Translations under genes and position numbers: made by a program | Notes under the pieces: generated by a model | Databases searched by the model: none | What the model was told of the DNA's origin: nothing | What the model saw: the letters and a program-made list of their open reading frames with translations, nothing else | Sequence record: NC_019401.1 | Direction: 5' to 3' (one strand) | Length of the DNA stretch: 64,000 nucleotides | Shown: positions 2,656-64,000 of the stretch, piece after piece | Numbering within the stretch: the stretch's first letter is position 1 | How the letters are laid out: each line of letters opens with the position of its first letter

Positions 2656-3560
2656 TGACTATGTACGAAGAAATTCCATTCGGAACACGTTCTGAACGAT
2701 ATGATTGTGTGTTCGTGTGGATATATGCAAAAAACTGTACTCCATACGCAAACTATCCTTACAATGATATTCCAAATGTAAGTTTAGTACTGTCAGAATT
2801 ACGTTTTGACGGATTAATGGGTGCAGTCGGTGGGATGGTAGAACATAATGATCCATGTTTAGAAATTGCCGTTCATCGGGAAGCAAAAGAAGAAATTGAT
2901 TATGATTTACCAATTCAACGTTTAGAGCCGTTGGTAAGTTATAAAAATTGTGTATCTGGTTCACACAACCATGCATTTTCGTTGGAAGTATCTTACGAAG
3001 AACTTTTGGAGATTCGTAATAATGCTCATAACGGTGCACATTTTAGTGCTGAAAATGCTGGGGTGAACTTACTACATATCTGCCGTTACCTTAAAGGTAA
3101 CAAAGTAGAATGTGGTTGGAACACACTACTTGAACAACGTTTTATTGGTACGGCCAAAATGGAACTAACGAAACTTGTTCGTACTAAAAATCTGTTAATT
3201 GACTATGTTGATGACGGAAAGACTGATACTTCATACAAAATGTTTTTGGATGATTTACGTGATGTTAATCAGTACTATCCTAATGAAGAATTTGTTGTGT
3301 GCCGTACTTATCAGGAAGCTGTTGAGTATGTTAAACAACATGGAATTCCGGCATTTGTATCATTTGACCATGATTTAGGTGACACTGAAAATGAAAATGA
3401 AGAAACTGGATATACGTTCGCTAAGTTTTTAGTTGATTATATGATGGATAATCAGATTGCTACTGAATTTGAGTATCACGTTCATAGTGCAAATCCAGTT
3501 GGTGCAATGAACATCATTGCTTATTTGGATAACGCATTTAAATTTATTCGGAGTTTATAA
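2655..3560 (+). CDS. Nudix (NUDT16-like) hydrolase fused to a cyclic-phosphate-processing receiver-like domain
   Basis: N-half LRFDGLMGAVGGMVE...REAKEEI; C-half FLDDLRD...SFDHDLG...TGY...VHSANPVG; single continuous ORF. Confidence 0.7.
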   Translation: MTMYEEIPFGTRSERYDCVFVWIYAKNCTPYANYPYNDIPNVSLVLSELRFDGLMGAVGGMVEHNDPCLEIAVHREAKEEIDYDLPIQRLEPLVSYKNCVSGSHNHAFSLEVSYEELLEIRNNAHNGAHFSAENAGVNLLHICRYLKGNKVECGWNTLLEQRFIGTAKMELTKLVRTKNLLIDYVDDGKTDTSYKMFLDDLRDVNQYYPNEEFVVCRTYQEAVEYVKQHGIPAFVSFDHDLGDTENENEETGYTFAKFLVDYMMDNQIATEFEYHVHSANPVGAMNIIAYLDNAFKFIRSL

Positions 3561-7475: not shown

Positions 7476-8288
7476 ATGACAGATCATAATAATCTTGATT
7501 CAGATGAATTGCAATTAGCAAGAGAGCTATTATTTTTAATGAGCGAGATTGCTCCAACAATTACTGCATATGTTTTTAGCGATAAATGTATGTTCGGTTT
7601 TGGGAAATATTCAGAACGTGTAATTAACTGGCTTGCTACTTACAATTTCATTGTTTGTAATAACAGAACTCCGATAAATGATTCTGGTAATGCGTTCATT
7701 AACTATTACGTATTAACCGATATGGGAAAAGCATTTAACAAGATTGGAGTACTAAGTACAATCGATGTTGAAGAAAATAAAGAAAAGTTTTTCGAGCTTG
7801 GTAATGAAATTTATTCCATTTTGGAAGCTTATTACGCTGAAGAAACGAATATGTTAGCTCGTCTACTTACAGTAGAAGAACAAGACTCGTATTCTAATTA
7901 CTATCGGTTGATGACATACGAATCTATTAAGAACCGAGGCAAAAACAGTACTGATACCATTCGTGAAAACGGCTTAAAAAATATGTTTTCTCTATCAGTA
8001 CTACTAGGTGAGAAAGATGATAATGATCGCCGTACATATGATTATGTACTTAAAAAATGCGTAGAAGAACTTGGCGAACTGTCATTAGAAATTCAAATTG
8101 ATTCGGGTCTTTCATATAAAGAACCTGGTGCAGATGGCATTGAGGGTGAAGCAGTTGATCTTGCAATTTGTGCGATGGATATGTTTGCATTACAATATCC
8201 AGGATTATCACCTGAGCAAATCGAAGCTGAATTCTATAAAAAGATGAATGAAAAATTAGAGAAGTGGAAACGCACTATAGGGATGTAA
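7476..8288 (+). CDS. protein with C-terminal MazG-like NTP pyrophosphohydrolase domain
   Basis: KCVEELGELSLEI...EGEAVDLAICAMD (EExxE...ExxD). Confidence 0.6.
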   Translation: MTDHNNLDSDELQLARELLFLMSEIAPTITAYVFSDKCMFGFGKYSERVINWLATYNFIVCNNRTPINDSGNAFINYYVLTDMGKAFNKIGVLSTIDVEENKEKFFELGNEIYSILEAYYAEETNMLARLLTVEEQDSYSNYYRLMTYESIKNRGKNSTDTIRENGLKNMFSLSVLLGEKDDNDRRTYDYVLKKCVEELGELSLEIQIDSGLSYKEPGADGIEGEAVDLAICAMDMFALQYPGLSPEQIEAEFYKKMNEKLEKWKRTIGM

Positions 8289-34839: not shown

Positions 34840-35227
34840 TATTGAACGTAAGTATTTCAGTACTAATGATACTGCTGAACGTTACAATATTTTAAAAGAA
34901 CTCACTGACCATCTTAATGAACTACGTCAAAAGACTGTTTCTCAAATTGGAAGTGGTTTTGAGAATTGCAACATGGCAGACGCTTTACGTAGAATATGTA
35001 TTTTATTAGCAGACCAAAGTGGTTGGGCTGTTAGTACTGTTTCAGATTACGTAAAAGAAAGTTCAACTATCGAAGATGTAACTGACAATTTAAGTCTAGA
35101 TTCACTAGATTTGGTTGAATTTATTATGGCAGTTGAAGAAGAATTTGATGCTGAAATCTCTGATGAAGATGCAGAAAAATTTGAAACAATTGGTGACATT
35201 ATTGCTAATGTTCTAATCCGTAATTAA
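34811..35227 (+). CDS. acpP: acyl carrier protein with N-terminal extension
   Basis: [36 protein letters not shown], including the DSL phosphopantetheine serine. Confidence 0.88.
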
Positions 35228-35233
35228 TCATTG

Positions 35234-35258
35234 AAACCCGCTGTTACTGGCGGGTTTT
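35234..35258 (+). terminator. rho-independent terminator
   Basis: AAACCCGC-N8-GCGGGTTT. Confidence 0.7.
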
Positions 35259-35302
35259 CTATTAAATATGGTATATACCTGAAAATTCATGAGGGGTTTA
35301 CC

Positions 35303-35680
35303 ATGTGGAATTTTATTAAGTTAAACAAATTACCAATAAGTATTGTTGCATTTGTGTTATACACAGTACTGATGGTTTTTGGTGGTTGGAAAGTTCATAC
35401 CTACTATGTTGGCTATCAACAAAATCTTGAAGCTAAAGTAGAGCAAGTTGTTAAAGATGGTATCAGTACTTATCAACGCAACCAGGCTCAAGGGTTAGAA
35501 GATACAAAAAATCTCCTAAAAGATGCCAAAACTAACACAATCATTAAAGAAAGTACTATTGTTAATAGACCTATCTATATGCAACAATGTATAGATCAAG
35601 CTGGTGTTGATTTACTAAAACAGTACCGTGAGGATTCTAAAAACATAATCAACGGGACTAAGAAAAATGAAAAAAATTAA
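35303..35680 (+). CDS. i-spanin (Rz-like)
   Basis: N-terminal TM, helical periplasmic part, PIYMQQCIDQAGV; overlaps a lipoprotein gene. Confidence 0.7.
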   Translation: MWNFIKLNKLPISIVAFVLYTVLMVFGGWKVHTYYVGYQQNLEAKVEQVVKDGISTYQRNQAQGLEDTKNLLKDAKTNTIIKESTIVNRPIYMQQCIDQAGVDLLKQYREDSKNIINGTKKNEKN

Positions 35681-36452: not shown

Positions 36453-36710
36453 ATGGATGATGATGTTTATTATCGTATAATTCGCACCCGCGAAGATGAT
36501 AACATACTTACTGTTGTGTGTATGCAATGGTTTGATGAAGATGCCTACGATGTTAATCGTTTTTTATGTGCCAAAGGCACTGATGATCGTTTGATATTCA
36601 GTACTGTAGAAAAGGCAGTTAAGTTCCTGAATGATAACATCAAACAAGAATTTATTGATCCTGAGTATCGCTGTATGACTCAGGAAAACAATGATTCATT
36701 CTACAAATAA
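36453..36710 (+). CDS. hypothetical protein
   Basis: 85 aa, GAGGA RBS. Confidence 0.75.
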   Translation: MDDDVYYRIIRTREDDNILTVVCMQWFDEDAYDVNRFLCAKGTDDRLIFSTVEKAVKFLNDNIKQEFIDPEYRCMTQENNDSFYK

Positions 36711-36740
36711 ATGAAACACAATTAAAAATTGTGGTATAAT
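36711..36740 (+). promoter_or_regulatory. promoter, ATGAAAC-N17-TATAAT class
   Basis: ATGAAAC, 17 nt, TGG-TATAAT. Confidence 0.7.
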
Positions 36741-37360
36741 GTAGGGGAAGACCTGAAAAGGTTTTCCTCTAAAAACTCTGATTGATCCATAATATGGAAT
36801 AGTTTAAACCTGATCTCGTTGAAAATGTAAACAGCAGATGAGTAGTTCAATCAGTACGAGTGCAATATATTTTACCCGTTAGGAATCGGCATAGTTTGTA
36901 CCGACCACGGCAATGCGGCACTTTAAATGCGTCCTTGACATGAACGCACTAGATAGGCATTAGAGGCATACTCACCTGTTAAAAGGGAGATATTCTACGG
37001 AATATCAATAGTACTTGTTGCTGAATTAGCGAGTACTATATGCGAAGGAATGTGAAATCTTCGACCGTTGTATGCGACTGTAGTAACTGGAAACCGGACA
37101 ACCCGCCAGTGTTTGCTACAAATTTTAGATAATATAGATCCGTCCAAAATTTGAGTAAAATCTACAAATTCAGAGGTAAGACTACCACCGTCAGATATAT
37201 TCTGACTTTTTTTCGTTCCCCTTTCGTGGGGGGATGCAAATGGATCAACAAACCCCGTCAGTATAAAAGTATTGAACGTACTTAAATAATAGAACTGAAT
37301 GTTTAATTATTCGAGTTCGACAGAACGAGAAGAATGAAACATTCTTGGCTAACGGAGTTA
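36741..37360 (+). ncRNA. candidate large structured non-coding RNA (~600 nt)
   Basis: no ORF of 60 aa or more; directly after a promoter; GC-richer than flanks; GAAA and cUACGg tetraloop hairpins with G-U pairs; 9 bp long-range helix 36782-36790/37240-37248. Confidence 0.55.
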
Positions 37361-37364
37361 GACA

Positions 37365-37736
37365 ATGAACATTGGAGAAAACGAGTACTTTGATAACATA
37401 CTAATAAAGTACTTCCTTATTTTAATTGAGATTAATCTGTATACTTACAGATTTAATAGTTTTAGATTGAATATTGAATCTAAAAAGGATAAATCACCTG
37501 GCATTTACGAAGCAATGCAGGAGATGGCTTATCTAGGTGAAAAGATAGTATGTGTTAATTTTGATCGTAGCTATCCCGTCAAACATACTGATAATATACA
37601 CTACTTTATCGGGAAAAATGCGTATTACTTACCACCAGTACCTTGTGACTTTTTATTCATATGTAATAATATAACAAGAGAAGAATTGGATAAAATAGCA
37701 AATTTTTATAATCCAAAGTTTATTTTTCACTGCTAA
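37365..37736 (+). CDS. hypothetical protein
   Basis: 123 aa, GGAG RBS; weak. Confidence 0.5.
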   Translation: MNIGENEYFDNILIKYFLILIEINLYTYRFNSFRLNIESKKDKSPGIYEAMQEMAYLGEKIVCVNFDRSYPVKHTDNIHYFIGKNAYYLPPVPCDFLFICNNITREELDKIANFYNPKFIFHC

Positions 37737-42502: not shown

Positions 42503-43768
42503 ATGTCTGAGTTTGTAACTGAAGGTCGCCGCCTGGTAACGATCCGTAAAATTAACGAAATTAACCCGATTCCAAATGCAGATGCTATTGAAGTCGCAAC
42601 CATAGATGGTTGGAATGTTGTCACCAAAAAAGGTGAATTCAGCGTTGGTGATTACTGTGTATTTTTTGAAATCGATTCATTTCTTCCAGCGAATGATCCA
42701 CGATTTTCATTCCTTGCAAAAAATGGAACTAAAACTGATGAAGCTGGTGCAGAACGTATTCGTCTTCGTTCAGTTAAACTTCGTGGTCAGCTTTCCCAGG
42801 GTTTAGCTCTACCAGTAAGTGCATTTTCTGATTTCTTTTTCCGTATCAATGATCGTGTGATGTATTGTCTGGCTCCCGATGCAGAAACCATTATGGGTCA
42901 TGCACTACAAGATCTGAAAGAACTCGAAGAATCTCGCGTAGGTATTGAAAAGTTTCTTAATGTAACTAAGTACGAACGCCCTGATGAACGAAATGGTGGT
43001 ACTGGAGCAGGTAAAGCAAAAACTGCTGGCAATTTCCCAATTATGATTCCTAAAACGGATGAAGACCGTGTACAGAATGTATTTGGTAAATTCAAACAAA
43101 CTATGCAGGGTGTTCCGTTCCGTAAATCACTTAAACTTGATGGTTCAAGTCAGACGATTGCGTATTTCAATAATCCTGATTTCTTTGTTGATAAAGTGGA
43201 TGATGAAGTTGTTGCATGGGATGAAGAATCTCAAGAGTTAAAAGTACTGGAAGTGAAACCATATCCTTTCCAGTGGGAAAGTTCTCAGGTAGTAGTTTGT
43301 TCACGTAACCTTGCATTGAAATTTGATGAAAGTACTGCATTCTGGAAAGCAGCATTGAAAGATGATATTCCAGCACGTCTTAAAAAGTACTGTGAAGACC
43401 ATGACCGCCAGCTTGCACTTCAGGGTGAATGTATGGGGCCAGGTATCCAAGGTAACCGCGAACAATTGGAAGAACATGAATTCTATTGCTTCCGTATTTG
43501 GGATATTGACAATCAGAACTTCCTTGATGATGCAGATTTCATTGAAGTAACTCGTATCCTTGGAATTAATATTGTACCACAAGGTGAGATTGTTTACTTC
43601 TTTGATGAATATGAAACTATCAAAGATGCCCTTGCAAGTGCAGACCATGCAAGTATTGTTCATCCTATTGCAGAAGGTGATGTTTATAAAAGTACTGTTA
43701 AAGTTAATGGTCAAACTATTCACTTTAAAGTTATTAATGATAAATTCCTTCTGAAGTGTGAAGATTAA
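42503..43768 (+). CDS. ATP-dependent RNA ligase, DRB0094-like (N-terminal OB fold)
   Basis: KLDGSS (KxDG), LQGECMGPGIQGN, EGDVYK, FKVIN; N-terminal IPNADAIEVATIDGW. Confidence 0.88.
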   Translation: MSEFVTEGRRLVTIRKINEINPIPNADAIEVATIDGWNVVTKKGEFSVGDYCVFFEIDSFLPANDPRFSFLAKNGTKTDEAGAERIRLRSVKLRGQLSQGLALPVSAFSDFFFRINDRVMYCLAPDAETIMGHALQDLKELEESRVGIEKFLNVTKYERPDERNGGTGAGKAKTAGNFPIMIPKTDEDRVQNVFGKFKQTMQGVPFRKSLKLDGSSQTIAYFNNPDFFVDKVDDEVVAWDEESQELKVLEVKPYPFQWESSQVVVCSRNLALKFDESTAFWKAALKDDIPARLKKYCEDHDRQLALQGECMGPGIQGNREQLEEHEFYCFRIWDIDNQNFLDDADFIEVTRILGINIVPQGEIVYFFDEYETIKDALASADHASIVHPIAEGDVYKSTVKVNGQTIHFKVINDKFLLKCED

Positions 43769-43775
43769 GTTTTAT

Positions 43776-43802
43776 TAGCAGCTTAATTAAGCTGCTATTT
43801 TT
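43776..43802 (+). terminator. rho-independent terminator
   Basis: TAGCAGCTT-AATT-AAGCTGCTA plus T run. Confidence 0.75.
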
Positions 43803-43813
43803 AAGTAAGAAAA

Positions 43814-43843
43814 ATGAAACGCCTCTGAAAAATGTGGTATAAT
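43814..43843 (+). promoter_or_regulatory. promoter, ATGAAAC-N17-TATAAT class
   Basis: ATGAAAC, 17 nt, TGG-TATAAT. Confidence 0.7.
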
Positions 43844-43936
43844 CATAGCATTAAAGGACGTGCTGGGGAGCACACCTTAAATGATATAAGAAGTGAGTCA
43901 ACAAAAAATTAATCCATTTCTGAAAAGGAAACAAAA

Positions 43937-45451
43937 ATGTCAGCATTTAAAAACGCAGTAAACAATGTAAACACAACCGCAGCAAATAACCGTTCTACAA
44001 CCGCTAATGGTGGTGCGTCTCTAAAGAGTACCCTAAATCCATTGGTTGATCTGTTCTTCATGATCGGTTCTCTACGTAACAAAGATCTTGGTGCGTACAA
44101 AGCACAATTTGATGCAGCATATGCAGCTAACCCAACGTTAGCATTGCAGATGATTCTTTGGGCACGTGATGTTCGTGGTGGTGCTGGCGAACGTAATACC
44201 CCACGTGAACTTTTGAAGTATTTGGAAGTGAAACATCCTGAAGATGTATTGCGTGTAATTCCAGTACTTGCAGAATTCGGTCGTTGGGATGATCTGTTGA
44301 TCTTCAAAACCGCTGCTGCGAAGTCCGTTGCGTATTCTGCAATTGCAGAAGCACTACAAAGTGGTAATGGTCTTTGTGCAAAATGGATGCCACGCATCTA
44401 TAAATTCAAAAAGAATGCACAAGGTGTTGTTGATATGAATAGTACGGCGAACAAAAACCGTGCACATAACAACAAAATTGCACGTGAAATCATGGCTACC
44501 ATGAATATCAACGAACGTACTTATCGTAAGCTACTTGCATCTTTGAGCAACACCGTTGAACAAAAGATGTGTGCGAACGAATGGGATGAAATTGATTACG
44601 GCAAGCTACCATCAGTTGCAAGTTCTCGTTATCTACCAGCATTCATGAAACGTGATGAAAATCGCTATCGTGAATACCTAGCTTCTCTTGAAAAAGGTGA
44701 AGGTAAAGTTAACGCTGGTGCATTGTTCCCATACGATGTAACTCGTAAGTTAAACACTAATTCTCAGGCAACTACTCTTGCAGTAGCACAATGGGAACAG
44801 TTGAAAAACTTTATGGGTGAAAACACCGCAGTACCAATGGTTGATACTTCCGGCTCCATGACTTGTCGTGCAGGTGAAAGTGGTATGTCTTGTATGGACA
44901 TTGCAATCTCTCTTGGTCTGTATATTGCAGACAAACAAGAAGGTGCGTTCAAAGACTTGTTCTTGAACTTTAGTTCCCGTCCACGTTTGTTTGAACTTAA
45001 AGGTAACAATATTGCAGAGAAACATCGCGATATTCTACGTTATCAGGCAGGTCAATATTGGGGTGGTAGCACCAACGTTGAAGCAGCTTTCCAGGAAGTT
45101 CTTCGTGTTGCAGTAGCTCAGCAAGTTCCTGCTGATCAAATGCCAAAGAACTTAATTGTTCTTAGCGATATGGAATTTAACGCATCAACTTCTGGTGGTT
45201 GGAACGCAACTGCTTACAATAAAGCGAAAGCTGATTTTGCACGTGCAGGTTATGAACTACCAACAGTTGTATTCTGGAATCTAAATGCACGTGCTGGTAA
45301 CAATCCAGTTCGTTTCGACCAGAACAATGTAGCACTTGTAAGTGGTTTCAGCCCTTCAGTACTAGAAGCAATTCTAAGTGGTGAAGATGTTGATCCAGTA
45401 AAAGTAATGCTACGTGCAATCGATACTCCACGGTATCGTGTACTAGGTTAA
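43937..45451 (+). CDS. TROVE/Ro60-like (DUF2828) protein with C-terminal vWA domain
   Basis: RDVRGGAGER, FGRWDDL, AKWMPR, VDTSGSM (MIDAS), LSDMEF, VFWNL. Confidence 0.85.
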   Translation: MSAFKNAVNNVNTTAANNRSTTANGGASLKSTLNPLVDLFFMIGSLRNKDLGAYKAQFDAAYAANPTLALQMILWARDVRGGAGERNTPRELLKYLEVKHPEDVLRVIPVLAEFGRWDDLLIFKTAAAKSVAYSAIAEALQSGNGLCAKWMPRIYKFKKNAQGVVDMNSTANKNRAHNNKIAREIMATMNINERTYRKLLASLSNTVEQKMCANEWDEIDYGKLPSVASSRYLPAFMKRDENRYREYLASLEKGEGKVNAGALFPYDVTRKLNTNSQATTLAVAQWEQLKNFMGENTAVPMVDTSGSMTCRAGESGMSCMDIAISLGLYIADKQEGAFKDLFLNFSSRPRLFELKGNNIAEKHRDILRYQAGQYWGGSTNVEAAFQEVLRVAVAQQVPADQMPKNLIVLSDMEFNASTSGGWNATAYNKAKADFARAGYELPTVVFWNLNARAGNNPVRFDQNNVALVSGFSPSVLEAILSGEDVDPVKVMLRAIDTPRYRVLG

Positions 45452-63106: not shown

Positions 63107-63118
63107 TAGGAGAAGAAT

Positions 63119-64000
63119 ATGTTTAAATCTTTAGATAATAACAATTCGATTCCAAATAATTATGTATACACTTCCAATAAAGGTACAGAATATATGTACC
63201 TTGATGGTTCATGGCTTAACTGTGAAACTATGAGTACTGTTCCTAGTACTCATAATTTTAAAATGAATGAGTCAGCAATTCGTCAGATTGCTGAACATAA
63301 CCGACATAACAAATTACAAATCGGTAAGAAATATGTCATCAAAGAATCTGAATATGTATATGTTGGTCGCAATAACTTCACATTAAACGATAACTTATTG
63401 ACAGAAAATGTAAATTCTCGTGTTAAAATGTTGGTTGAGGCTGATGCAAAATCTGAGTTTTCTAATGTAAAATTAGGCAGTACTGAAAATATCGAAATTC
63501 CAGATAAGTTTAAACTTGATGGTTATGTATACAACAAGGCGAAAAAAGCTTGGTGGGGTACTACTGATAACGGTAACGCTGGTTATATAAAAGACCAAGA
63601 ATTAATTGATGAACTTAACAAAGATTCAATTGAACGAATTAAAAAGTATAATGAAAAAGACCCATATCCAGTAGGAACAACTGTTGACTACAATGGTAAA
63701 ACTGCAATATGGAATGGTGAAGTTTTTGTTGTTCCAGGTGAAGGTGCTTACCCACCAGGATTTGCACAACAATTTGATGATTATTTTCAAAATGTTTATA
63801 AATCTGGTAATAACAATGACAGTACTGAACAACAGGATAAAGAAGATACCGTGAATACCTCTGACAATTCAAATACTAATGAACCACAAAATACAGGTTC
63901 AACAAGTAGTACTGAAGTTCCTAACGGATTTGTGTATCAATCTGGAAAAGGCAAAAGTTATTACAAGAAAAATGGTCGCTGGTTCTCAAGTGAAACCAAA
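63119..64000 (+). CDS. partial CDS running off the window end (not in ORF track)
   Basis: ATG 63119 with AGGAG RBS, open to 64000; internal repeat IPNNYVYTSNKGTEY...W / VPNGFVYQSGKGKSY...W. Confidence 0.8.
   Translation, partial: MFKSLDNNNSIPNNYVYTSNKGTEYMYLDGSWLNCETMSTVPSTHNFKMNESAIRQIAEHNRHNKLQIGKKYVIKESEYVYVGRNNFTLNDNLLTENVNSRVKMLVEADAKSEFSNVKLGSTENIEIPDKFKLDGYVYNKAKKAWWGTTDNGNAGYIKDQELIDELNKDSIERIKKYNEKDPYPVGTTVDYNGKTAIWNGEVFVVPGEGAYPPGFAQQFDDYFQNVYKSGNNNDSTEQQDKEDTVNTSDNSNTNEPQNTGSTSSTEVPNGFVYQSGKGKSYYKKNGRWFSSETK

Follow-up and report, generated by a model that had tools for sequence, protein, structure and literature searches.

The window is a stretch of 64,000 nucleotides of the Cronobacter phage GAP32 genome (NC_019401.1), in which window position equals genome position minus 62000. 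A scan of both strands places its largest stretch without an ORF of at least 60 aa at 36711-37364, which bears out the claim of a first-pass annotation of the letters alone that the largest non-coding gap in the window lies here. The gap is unannotated in GenBank and is flanked by GAP32_163 and GAP32_164. A second ORF-free gap at 63107-63625 is only apparent, since the ORF there runs past the window end. The gap at 36711-37364 holds a free-standing structured-RNA gene that has its own promoter. The RNA gene occupies about 520-530 nt on the + strand (window ~36746-37263), and it is almost certainly functional as a structured RNA gene. There is no second copy of the element within the window, where just promoter-like matches occur at 43814 and 50515. 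The predicted features of the locus are listed below.

36711..36740, + strand: promoter with a -35-like ATGAAAC (36711-36717) and an extended -10 TGGTATAAT (36732-36740)
36743..36770, + strand: 12-bp 5' hairpin, GAAA loop, with compensatory changes among orthologues and paralogues
36778..36857, + strand: 5' core pseudoknot
36778-85 with 36847-54, + strand: helix P1, CTGATTGA with TCAATCAG, 94.6% paired, 56 doubly changed cells
36786-98, + strand: hairpin P2, TCCAT/ATGGA, local and covarying
36810-37, + strand: hairpin P3
36835-59, + strand: near-invariant block CAGATGAGTAGTTCAATCAGTACGA
36842-44 with 36855-57, + strand: helix H3, GTA with TAC, crossing P1, 100% paired, 34 doubly changed cells
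36859-63 with 36918-22, + strand: helix P4, AGTGC with GCACT, 100% paired, 60 doubly changed cells
36876-79 with 36907-10, + strand: helix P5, CCGT with ACGG, invariant
36886-36904, + strand: variable hairpin P6 within the part 36859..36948, after which comes the invariant CACGGCAATGCGGC
36928-36948, + strand: hairpin P7, 143 doubly changed cells
36949..37063, + strand: junction CTAGATAG, an AAGGGAG block and three hairpins
36989-37006, 37008-37039 and 37043-37063, + strand: covarying hairpins
37064..37120, + strand: central pseudoknot core GACCGTTGT, with the near-invariant loop GAAACCGGACAACCCGC
37067-71 with 37098-37102, + strand: central pseudoknot helix, GTTGT with ACAAC, 100% paired, 37 doubly changed cells
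37079-83 with 37116-20 and 37087-90 with 37106-09, + strand: crossed helices, TGTAG/CTACA and CTGG/CCAG, 99-100% paired, 96 and 70 doubly changed cells
37128..37172, + strand: transposable peripheral module that starts ATAATATAGATCCGTCCAAAATTTGAG
37180..37213, + strand: block GACTACCACCGTCAGA, then terminator-like hairpin GTCAGA/TCTGAC (37190-37206) and, after it, a T7 run (37207-13)
37214..37263, + strand: conserved 3' block with a pyrimidine tract, a CCCC/GGGG hairpin (37218-31), a G6 run (37228-33), ATG.AAATG and CAACAAAYCYCGTCAGTA (ends 37263)
37264..37364, + strand: poorly conserved AT-rich spacer (identity 59-71% vs 87-95% for the element) with one hairpin (37330-46) and, for GAP32_164, a ribosome-binding-site hairpin

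The promoter had been proposed from ATGAAAC and TGGTATAAT, and it is present with a spacer of 18 nt between the two and a promoter-scan score of 10/12 with the TG extension. Transcription is expected to start near 36746-36748. A TGAAAC-N17/18-TGnTATAAT promoter precedes all five GAP32 copies of the element at equal distance, and the form TGAAAY-N17-TATACT is found in 12 copies from integrative islands. The promoter class was called 'divergent RpoD-like' in the description of phage CBB, where it was reported upstream of DNA-synthesis genes (PMC5259590). Toward the 3' end, the terminator scan predicts an intrinsic terminator at 37190-37213, which has a G+C-containing hairpin with a 6-bp stem and a 5-nt loop followed by the T7 run. 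Copies A, C and E have a hairpin and T-run at the corresponding place, and B and D do not. In A, C and E the conserved 50-nt block lies 3' of this terminator-like hairpin.

Alignment of relatives supports a predicted fold in which 13 or more helices covary, with two pseudoknots; some dozen junction blocks are near-invariant, and the place of a peripheral module shifts between paralogues. RNA of the + strand folds better than its shuffles (z = -3.98, 0/100 shuffles as good); for the - strand, z is -2.33. Across 67 distinct sequences (alignment A5), canonical pairs fill 98.5% of the pair cells of the 5' domain, and double compensatory changes occur in 21 of its 27 pairs. The covariation score of this alignment is 0.683, whereas slid controls score 0.04-0.08 and shuffles 0.161, and none of 500 shuffles reaches the observed value; this pair-count scoring with controls covered the 5' domain alone, and the whole-molecule pair statistics come from a custom script. 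A separate alignment has compensatory changes at 39 of 72 predicted pairs. Compensatory substitutions keep the base pairs beyond controls, which is the generic mark of a structured ncRNA, and a promoter of its own in every copy with no conserved reading frame is that of an ncRNA gene. The comparative support for the RNA class is unusually strong. Conservation and covariation among relatives, the absence of which the first-pass annotation had named as fatal to its claim, are both found, and together with negative Rfam and ARAGORN searches they strongly support its description of a large non-coding RNA that has a promoter and an elaborate structure.

The hairpins listed in that annotation are all where it had placed them, and most (36743-36770, 36989-37006, 37043-37063, 37079-37120 and CCCC/GGGG) have compensatory changes in relatives. 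A 9-bp helix of 36782-36790 with 37240-37248, which had been proposed to close the domain, exists in GAP32 but is not conserved, and closure of the domain by this helix is refuted. TCCAT pairs locally with ATGGA (36786-36798) and CTGATTGA pairs with TCAATCAG, both covarying. The two pseudoknots and the presence of five paralogues per genome had been missed. The 5' hairpin at 36743..36770 is variable periphery that is found in A, B and 121Q-type copies and not in C, D or E. The position of the peripheral module relative to the landmark GACCGT depends on the paralogue, being upstream in 17, downstream in 15 and on both sides in 1 of 65 non-redundant members. GATAG (36952-56) is a candidate partner of 37182-86, with GATAG/CTAYC 90% compatible and zero double changes. 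The AAGGGAG block and the pyrimidine tract 5' of the G6 run give a mean pairing run of 6.5 bp vs 5.8 bp when shuffled. Variation in the CCCC/GGGG hairpin is solely from C to U facing an invariant G, giving G-U pairs, so the hairpin is read on the + strand.

A search of the whole window against Rfam 15 at the gathering score gave no matches, and a permissive search of 36500-37600 gave chance-level matches only (E >= 0.1), including those to snR51 and RAGATH-34. Nothing was found at E up to 1 in six paralogue loci or three island loci. The families covered include RNase P, tmRNA, group I/II introns, 6S, SRP and Y RNA, as well as GOLLD, ROOL, OLE, raiA, HEARO and EAR. ARAGORN found no tRNA and no tmRNA in the window. 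These negative searches agree with the earlier impression by eye that the RNA is not a tRNA, tmRNA, RNase P or intron. No published description of this RNA was found in the literature searched, and the RNA family is previously undescribed. Large RNAs with a complex fold are uncommon, and new biology has followed from every new class, as with RNase P, group I/II introns, tmRNA and, more recently, OLE, GOLLD and ROOL. GOLLD and ROOL occur in phage genomes. Like GOLLD, ROOL, OLE and raiA, the element is longer than 500 nt and has a covarying multi-helix fold, pseudoknots, invariant junctions and no known function. Unlike them, it exists as five dispersed, evenly spaced paralogues with their own conserved promoters, plus island copies, and it matches none of their Rfam models. 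The distantly related jumbo phage PA5oct has abundant lncRNAs of 0.24-0.62 kb defined by RNA-seq, ncRNA001-004 (PMC7318152). Neither nhmmer nor a covariance model gives homology to PA5oct ncRNA002 and ncRNA004, and the PA5oct ncRNAs, unlike the GAP32 copies, are not evenly spaced.

Sequence comparison indicates that the RNA family is conserved across the Rak2-like jumbo phages. The element is 94.5% identical to that of CBB and 87.4% identical to that of Yen9-04, and the flanking genes are 62-80% identical. Between 62 and 71 phage records match the element and none is annotated as RNA. A 14-mer scan of IMG/VR was too unspecific, and longer degenerate patterns were effective. GAP32 has five paralogues, all on the + strand, at genome positions 35107, 98741, 177445, 261453 and 340659. 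The gaps between them are 64, 79, 84, 79 and 53 kb, more even than random placement (p = 0.002-0.005), and five paralogues occur per Mimasvirus or Eneladusvirus genome; since these genomes are syntenic, the even spacing is really one observation. Asteriusvirus has four dispersed copies on the + strand with gaps of 53, 80, 110 and 109 kb, which are weakly even (p estimated at ~0.06), and a Klebsiella Alcyoneusvirus has at least one copy. Divergence among the paralogues is deep, yet every one of them has stayed at its syntenic site across genera. Genes on the + strand lie within 100-270 nt 3' of four of the five GAP32 copies, and for B and D no terminator is evident between the copy and these genes. 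Copy E stands by itself between minus-strand genes, adjoining gp46-like and EndoVII genes, and minus-strand genes and a bidirectional terminator lie downstream of it. No partner protein co-localised with the copies was found in their neighbourhoods.

Enterobacter, Serratia, Silvania, Buttiauxella and E. coli also have full-length members, one to an island, in small integrative islands. The island copies sit near the integrase, and some of the copy-bearing islands have candidate anti-phage genes. The island RNA is convergent with a CI repressor gene and is not 5' of an operon. Islands with no recognisable replication genes have a copy, the nearest relatives of which are jumbo-phage copies. Virulent jumbo phages and the small islands have repeatedly exchanged the element. 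A conserved 286-aa island protein was considered as an RNA partner or Rep and was rejected; it has no family, no phage homologue and is found in Enterobacteriaceae only. The GAP32 copy has no similarity to E. coli genomes; therefore, it does not derive from a host RNA gene. Five ancient evenly spaced paralogues, a conserved dedicated promoter and repeated phage-island exchange have not been seen together before. Laboratory phage-host pairs exist (for example Asteriusvirus on E. coli K-12), which makes it directly testable how replication or transcription of a 350-kb phage genome is organised and whether islands exploit or sabotage jumbo phages via a common RNA.

The function of the RNA may be tied to replication origins. 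The first-pass annotation had offered an R-loop primer transcript for an origin as an alternative, and this gains weight from the five evenly spaced copies, the promoter class linked to DNA synthesis and the capture by integrative islands. The most likely single mechanism, put forward tentatively, is that the RNA works in place, at the locus that encodes it, as a replication-origin transcript. The middle-type promoter would fire and the nascent RNA would fold into a defined structure. Close to the U-run/G6 this structure may, as in ColE1 RNA II, help to establish either a lasting RNA-DNA hybrid or a 3' end made by processing. The T4-like phage replisome would start leading-strand synthesis from there, along the direction of transcription. 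Five such starts would split the 359-kb genome into units of ~55-85 kb, and the one-copy islands would either be replicated by a jumbo phage that infects the cell or be competitors for the phage replisome. T4 origins have a promoter of middle mode together with an R-loop primer, with several per genome, and T4 origin plasmids replicate in infected cells (PMC3016281). A promoter-driven non-coding transcript is predicted at the site in GAP32 from the promoter sequence, which is a likeness to ColE1 RNA II and T4 oriF/oriG; as with T4, the phages that carry the element have T4-like replication and recombination genes.

ColE1 RNA II is ~550 nt and its fold decides hybrid formation; unlike the element, it has no pseudoknotted invariant core. 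To our knowledge, T4 oriF and oriG need only ~100 bp and have no common conserved RNA fold, in contrast to the elaborate fold of the element. A 520-nt pseudoknotted RNA with invariant junctions far exceeds known priming needs and has more the look of a ribozyme or of the RNA in an RNP, which argues against an origin. The 100 nt downstream of the copies have a GC of 0.29-0.40 vs 0.35 for the genome, with no clear A+T-rich unwinding element. The cumulative GC skew of the full Asteriusvirus EC22.5-2 genome has no break at three of the four copies and no sawtooth; it tracks gene orientation, and the copy at 223 kb alone is near a switch. The missing GC-skew shift counts for little, since a shift is absent from some T4 origins too. 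It is rather doubtful, though conceivable, that the Rak2-like phages define their five origins, spaced around the genome, by a dedicated folded ~0.5-kb RNA which islands have repeatedly pirated, either to have an infecting jumbo phage replicate and carry them like satellites or to use it as a decoy that starves the replisome. If true, this would be the first phage origin system specified by an RNA fold and a new kind of interaction between phages and genomic islands.

Only slightly less likely than the origin transcript, and likewise tentative, is an RNP or ribozyme RNA that acts in trans. The folded RNA itself would be the product, acting as a ribozyme, an RNP scaffold, a ROOL/GOLLD-like multimer or a decoy/sponge. 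The five genes would supply dosage or slight variants, and the islands would carry a mimic that titrates a phage factor or would gain the same benefit. An architecture of 13 or more helices that covary, two pseudoknots, roughly a dozen near-invariant junctions and a moving docking-type module is typical of RNAs with a 3D fold. In A, C and E the hairpin and U-run come directly after the last long-range pairing block, as in many stable small RNAs, and copy E is a stand-alone unit. The repeated exchange with defence-loaded islands suits a decoy or mimic. However, the even spacing is left unexplained, as are five diverged copies at fixed syntenic sites which are neither homogenised nor lost and the conserved 50-nt block 3' of the terminator-like hairpin (A, C, E). 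The copies also have no co-localised partner protein.

A cis-acting leader is unlikely. The nascent RNA would reprogram RNA polymerase by processive antitermination in the manner of HK022 put/EAR, with each promoter driving a domain of ~70 kb, or it would be a giant attenuator or riboswitch. The element resembles HK022 put/EAR in being a promoter-proximal structured RNA that is co-oriented with long gene arrays and has terminator-like hairpins inside or after it. It lies directly 3' of its own promoter, + strand genes begin 100-270 nt after four of the five GAP32 copies with no evident intervening terminator for B and D, and in three copies an internal intrinsic-terminator-like hairpin is followed by conserved sequence. 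The co-orientation and even spacing are also compatible with a leader. However, the antitermination RNAs known so far measure 65-120 nt, with no match among them; the element is five to eight times larger than put/EAR, without sequence or model similarity. Unlike put/EAR, copy E and the island copies have no downstream operon: minus-strand genes and a bidirectional terminator follow copy E, and in the islands the CI repressor gene and the RNA are convergent.

It is very unlikely that the element is a selfish or mobile repeat, intron-like without an ORF or MITE-like, which spread in the genome and islands without serving the phage. It is multi-copy and exchanged between phages and integrative islands, but the paralogues are old and syntenic across genera rather than recent insertions, terminal repeats and target duplications are absent and no intron model matches. 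The copies are also intergenic, each with its own promoter, and the structure is under strong purifying selection.

The chance that the RNA is a Y-RNA-like ligand of the neighbouring protein GAP32_176, which had been called 'Ro-like', is slighter still. As had been noted, the promoter motif also precedes this gene, and the gene adjoins an RNA ligase gene, reminiscent of rsr-rtcB loci; a structured ncRNA, a vWA-containing protein and an RNA ligase with a promoter motif in common resemble the Y RNA/Ro60 (Rsr) system. However, GAP32_176 matches DUF7788 (8.8e-43), DUF2828 (9.9e-33) and, weakly, VWA_2, and does not match TROVE. Unlike Y RNA, the element is multi-copy, has no Y-RNA features and is four to five times as long, and no Y RNA or YrlA model matches it. 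Four of the five copies are distant from GAP32_176, and the islands have the RNA without such a protein.

The probability that the gap is a degenerate or unrecognised coding region, or holds small translated ORFs, is negligible: there is a 30-aa ATG ORF at 37040-37132 and a micro-ORF after the G6 run, and some records annotate small ORFs inside copies, but coding potential was rejected because ORF length is inconsistent (25-75 aa) among A-type orthologues despite 87-95% nucleotide identity, the one-nucleotide indels and lost ATG start codons of the micro-ORF in the 3' block of some copies argue against coding, and the substitutions are paired and compensatory rather than codon-patterned. The present result also corrects the annotation of more than 60 GenBank records, in which copies of the element contain spurious small ORFs, a 'terminator' and a 'repeat_region'.

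The window matches Cronobacter phage vB_CsaM_GAP32 (JN882285.1) at 100% identity, and window positions equal GAP32 genome positions minus 62000. The region 36711-37364 lies unannotated between GAP32_163 and GAP32_164 and is the longest stretch of the window without an ORF of at least 60 aa on either strand, which agrees with the first-pass annotation of it as the largest non-coding gap. The sole other large gap in the window, 63107-63625, was rejected because it is an ORF continuing past the window end. The promoter-like site noted at the first pass is present: ATGAAAC (36711-17), a spacer of 18 nt and TGGTATAAT (36732-40), with a score of 10/12 and a TG extension. Every hairpin listed at that stage was also found where it had been placed. 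The + strand RNA fold of the gap has an energy of -143.3 kcal/mol (z = -3.98; 0/100 shuffles as good), and the - strand fold has a z of -2.33. Almost certainly, the element is a functional RNA gene whose large, intricately folded product belongs to a new family.

Matches to the gap occur in 62 phage records, every one from a Rak2-like jumbo phage (Mimasvirus, Eneladusvirus, Asteriusvirus and the Munch/7t3 group), so the comparison with related jumbo phages proposed at the first pass shows it to be conserved. The element (36741-37266) is 94.5% identical in CBB and 87.4% in Yen9-04, compared with 62-80% and 67-69%, respectively, for the flanking genes and 59-71% for the spacer 3' of the element. 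Therefore, this non-coding stretch is the best-conserved DNA of its neighbourhood.

Covariation, also proposed as a check on the structured RNA, is strong. The full-length set contains 65 members less than 96% identical to one another. RNAalifold on 23 sequences predicted 72 pairs, 39 of which have double compensatory changes. The 5' domain was aligned in 68 sequences (67 distinct) by its covariance model, R1. Its pair cells are 98.5% canonical versus 32-42% with slid partners, and 21 of 27 pairs are changed on both sides. The covariation score of 0.683 exceeds those of slid partners (0.04-0.08) and shuffles (0.161), and none of 500 shuffles reaches it.

Helices supported by our own per-helix counts across the whole molecule (window coordinates of the GAP32 copy)
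36778-85 with 36847-54, + strand: P1
P2, P3 and P7: hairpins
H3: 3-bp helix that crosses P1, giving the first pseudoknot
P4, with the invariant P5
Three central hairpins
Long-range helix closing the central domain
37079-83 with 37116-20, and 37087-90 with 37106-09: two nested helices
37067-71 (GTTGY) with 37098-37102 (RCAAC): second pseudoknot, 100% paired, 37 doubly changed cells

The 9-bp long-range helix suggested at the first pass (36782-90 with 37240-48) did not hold up; it is unconserved, and its 5' arm is taken by P1 and P2, both of which covary. The CCCC/GGGG hairpin varies only from C to U opposite an invariant G. Since these changes give G-U pairs, it is the + strand that forms the structure. 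Near-invariant junction blocks number about a dozen. A ~30-nt module (UACAAUAUAGAUCCGUCC...) sits on the 5' side of a GACCGU landmark in 17 members, on the 3' side in 15 and on both sides in 1; such switching of position is typical of a docking element in an RNA with a three-dimensional fold.

Pattern scans of IMG/VR found five loci with the invariant motifs per Mimasvirus or Eneladusvirus genome.

The five GAP32 copies (genome coordinates)
35107-35666, + strand: copy B
98741-99275, + strand: copy A (window copy)
177445-178022, + strand: copy E
261453-262023, + strand: copy C
340659-341183, + strand: copy D

The gaps between copies are 63.6, 78.7, 84.0 and 79.2 kb, with 53.1 kb across the genome ends, a spacing more even than chance (p = 0.002-0.005, 200,000 simulations). 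Copy E adjoins gp46-like and EndoVII genes and is flanked by minus-strand genes; it is therefore a stand-alone unit. The whole genome of Asteriusvirus EC22.5-2 has four + strand copies (89.9, 143.3, 223.1 and 333.2 kb), which are dispersed and weakly even (p ~0.06, estimated from positions). Klebsiella phage Muenster (Alcyoneusvirus) has a diverged copy scoring 70.5 bits with the 5'-domain covariance model. All five GAP32 copies share a promoter consisting of T/ATGAAAC or TTGGAAC, a spacer and TGGTATAAT, with a -35 of the unusual TGAAACG type. In CBB, promoters of this type were termed 'divergent RpoD-like' and are mostly upstream of DNA-synthesis genes (PMC5259590).

The copies differ in their 3' parts. 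After the block GACTAYCAYCGTCAGA, copies A, C and E have an intrinsic-terminator-like hairpin and T-run (37190-37213 in the window copy), which copies B and D lack. All copies have a conserved 3' block of about 50 nt, made up of a pyrimidine tract, a CCCC/GGGGGG hairpin, ATGAAAATG and CAACAAATCTCGTCAGTA; in A, C and E it lies 3' of the terminator-like hairpin. Copies C and E share additional conserved sequence some 60-110 nt past the core (…ACGAAAATTCTTTGACATTCGAAGAATGGCAAATC…), with a hairpin and a TTGACA motif (L146 about 3130-3190 and L269 about 3180-3230; L-numbers denote sequence stretches with their own coordinates). Past this stretch, copy E ends at a bidirectional terminator. Some records annotate features inside copies, namely small ORFs, a 'terminator' or a 'repeat_region'. 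The GenBank 'rho-independent terminator' after GAP32_066 (L144:35113-35142, the same in genome coordinates) is the 5' hairpin of copy B, directly 3' of the -10 box. This hairpin may end upstream transcription, form the RNA 5' end, or both.

The RNA also occurs in integrative islands. When each bacterial species was represented by a single genome, the scan recovered full-length members (323-357 bits, nhmmer) from Enterobacter chinensis, Silvania hatchlandensis, Serratia sp. 2723 and Enterobacteriaceae bacterium RIT714, as well as from MAGs of Buttiauxella and Enterobacteriaceae. In the conserved order, an integrase of the tyrosine or large serine type is followed by the RNA on the same strand, a convergent CI-like S24 repressor, a Ner-like HTH_35 protein, a family-less 286-aa protein, an LprI-like protein and a resolvase. 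The 286-aa protein is confined to Enterobacteriaceae, with no homologue in phages. The island is about 12.5 kb long, is flanked by ytfL-like and msrA/tamA host genes and has candidate anti-phage genes in its cargo, among them PDC-S73 (nSTAND3) and AbiGi. A TGAAAY-N17-TATACT promoter is at the same relative position in 12/12 island copies. In one island, the 30-nt promoter-like sequence TGAAAT-N17-CCTATACTA is present both immediately 3' of the integrase gene and before the RNA (L282:2224-2253, 2749-2778). The Serratia sp. L9 chromosome has a truncated member (L300:3493-3894, profile positions 187-562) that looks like a decayed island remnant; its neighbours are an IS-type transposase, T6SS Hcp and DUF4225 genes, and a RimO/MiaB-like gene.

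A different island, adjoining ffs in E. coli LR-29-1, has an RNA copy near the phage consensus (430 bits) without a PGAP annotation. Only 2/5,426 E. coli genomes have a copy; the GAP32 copy itself showed no similarity in 5,426 E. coli genomes. This island is inserted directly beside ffs (4.5S/SRP RNA; L312:2753-2849), and its tyrosine integrase gene is broken by IS3. About 400 nt 3' of the RNA (L312 about 7880-7950), direct and palindromic repeats of the TTATCGATCG type form a cluster; they look like iterons or operators. In the tree, the island clade is nested within phage diversity, as sister to the A types and beside the copies carried by a 349-kb jumbo-phage contig. The RNA gene has therefore been exchanged between jumbo phages and islands on more than one occasion.

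Rfam 15 gave no match in the whole window at the gathering score, only chance-level matches in the gap at E up to 10, and nothing in six paralogue and three island loci at E up to 1. An snR51 (yeast snoRNA) match at 36576-36666, inside GAP32_163, is below the gathering score (33.8 bits, E = 0.1) and was rejected as chance. ARAGORN found no tRNA or tmRNA, and the earlier impression that the region is not a tRNA, tmRNA, RNase P or intact intron thus stands. Full-text literature searches turned up no paper describing an RNA of this kind. It is rated as a new RNA class because it has no Rfam family, no RNA annotation at its loci in more than 60 records and no description in the literature searched, and because five evenly spaced paralogues and phage-island sharing have, to our knowledge, no precedent. 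This rating applies to the RNA itself; the underlying system may or may not be of a new kind. Its likeness to the 'large ornate RNA' class is in size and complexity only. The distant relative PA5oct has lncRNAs defined by RNA-seq (PMC7318152); the two compared, ncRNA002 and ncRNA004, have no homology to this family.

The function of the RNA may be that of an origin or primer, the likeliest single reading though less probable than not, for which a transcript-primed origin is the closest working model. The promoter-driven RNA would prime replication at its own locus, as in T4 oriF/oriG, and its fold could control RNA-DNA hybrid formation, as the fold of ColE1 RNA II can. A role tied to the locus is favoured by the even spacing, by five diverged copies having long been kept in syntenic positions, by a dedicated promoter whose class drives DNA-synthesis genes, by the phages' T4-like replication and recombination machinery, and by the element having been captured by islands in which no replication genes are recognisable. 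T4 oriF and oriG combine a middle-mode promoter with an R-loop priming leading-strand synthesis; each T4 genome contains several of these origins, and origin plasmids replicate in infected cells (PMC3016281). However, T4 origins do not need a conserved RNA fold, no unwinding element is evident, and no skew shift is seen at three of the four copies in Asteriusvirus EC22.5-2. The complexity of the fold is also that expected of an RNP or ribozyme RNA. A trans-acting RNA (RNP, ribozyme, assembly or decoy) is nearly as likely as the origin or primer model. A cis-acting antitermination or leader RNA is unlikely, and a selfish element very unlikely. A Ro/Y-RNA-type ligand is hardly to be expected, although the promoter class is shared with the 'Ro-like' gene, as claimed at the first pass; the exact motif occurs twice in the window, at the RNA gene and before this DUF2828 gene. 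Coding, including the small-ORF alternative, is effectively excluded, since orthologues that are nearly identical have ORFs ranging from 25 to 75 aa, and several copies have lost the frame and the start codon of the micro-ORF that follows the G6 run.

Annotated ORFs of 34-44 aa within RNA copies (GAP32_503A, L268:10072-10185; Yen9-04 g159 and g160, L002:2154-2456; Muenster_135, L277:1758-1889) have unconserved reading frames and are probably spurious. The window's only other exact promoter, TGAAAC-N-TGGTATAAT at 43815-43843, precedes a DUF2828/DUF7788/weak-VWA gene, which follows an RNA ligase gene (PHA02142 OB-fold domain and RNA_ligase) within 42503-45451. An HPF/S30EA-like gene and a CCA-adding enzyme gene are a few kb beyond, and the whole group resembles a neighbourhood of RNA-repair and ribosome-related genes.
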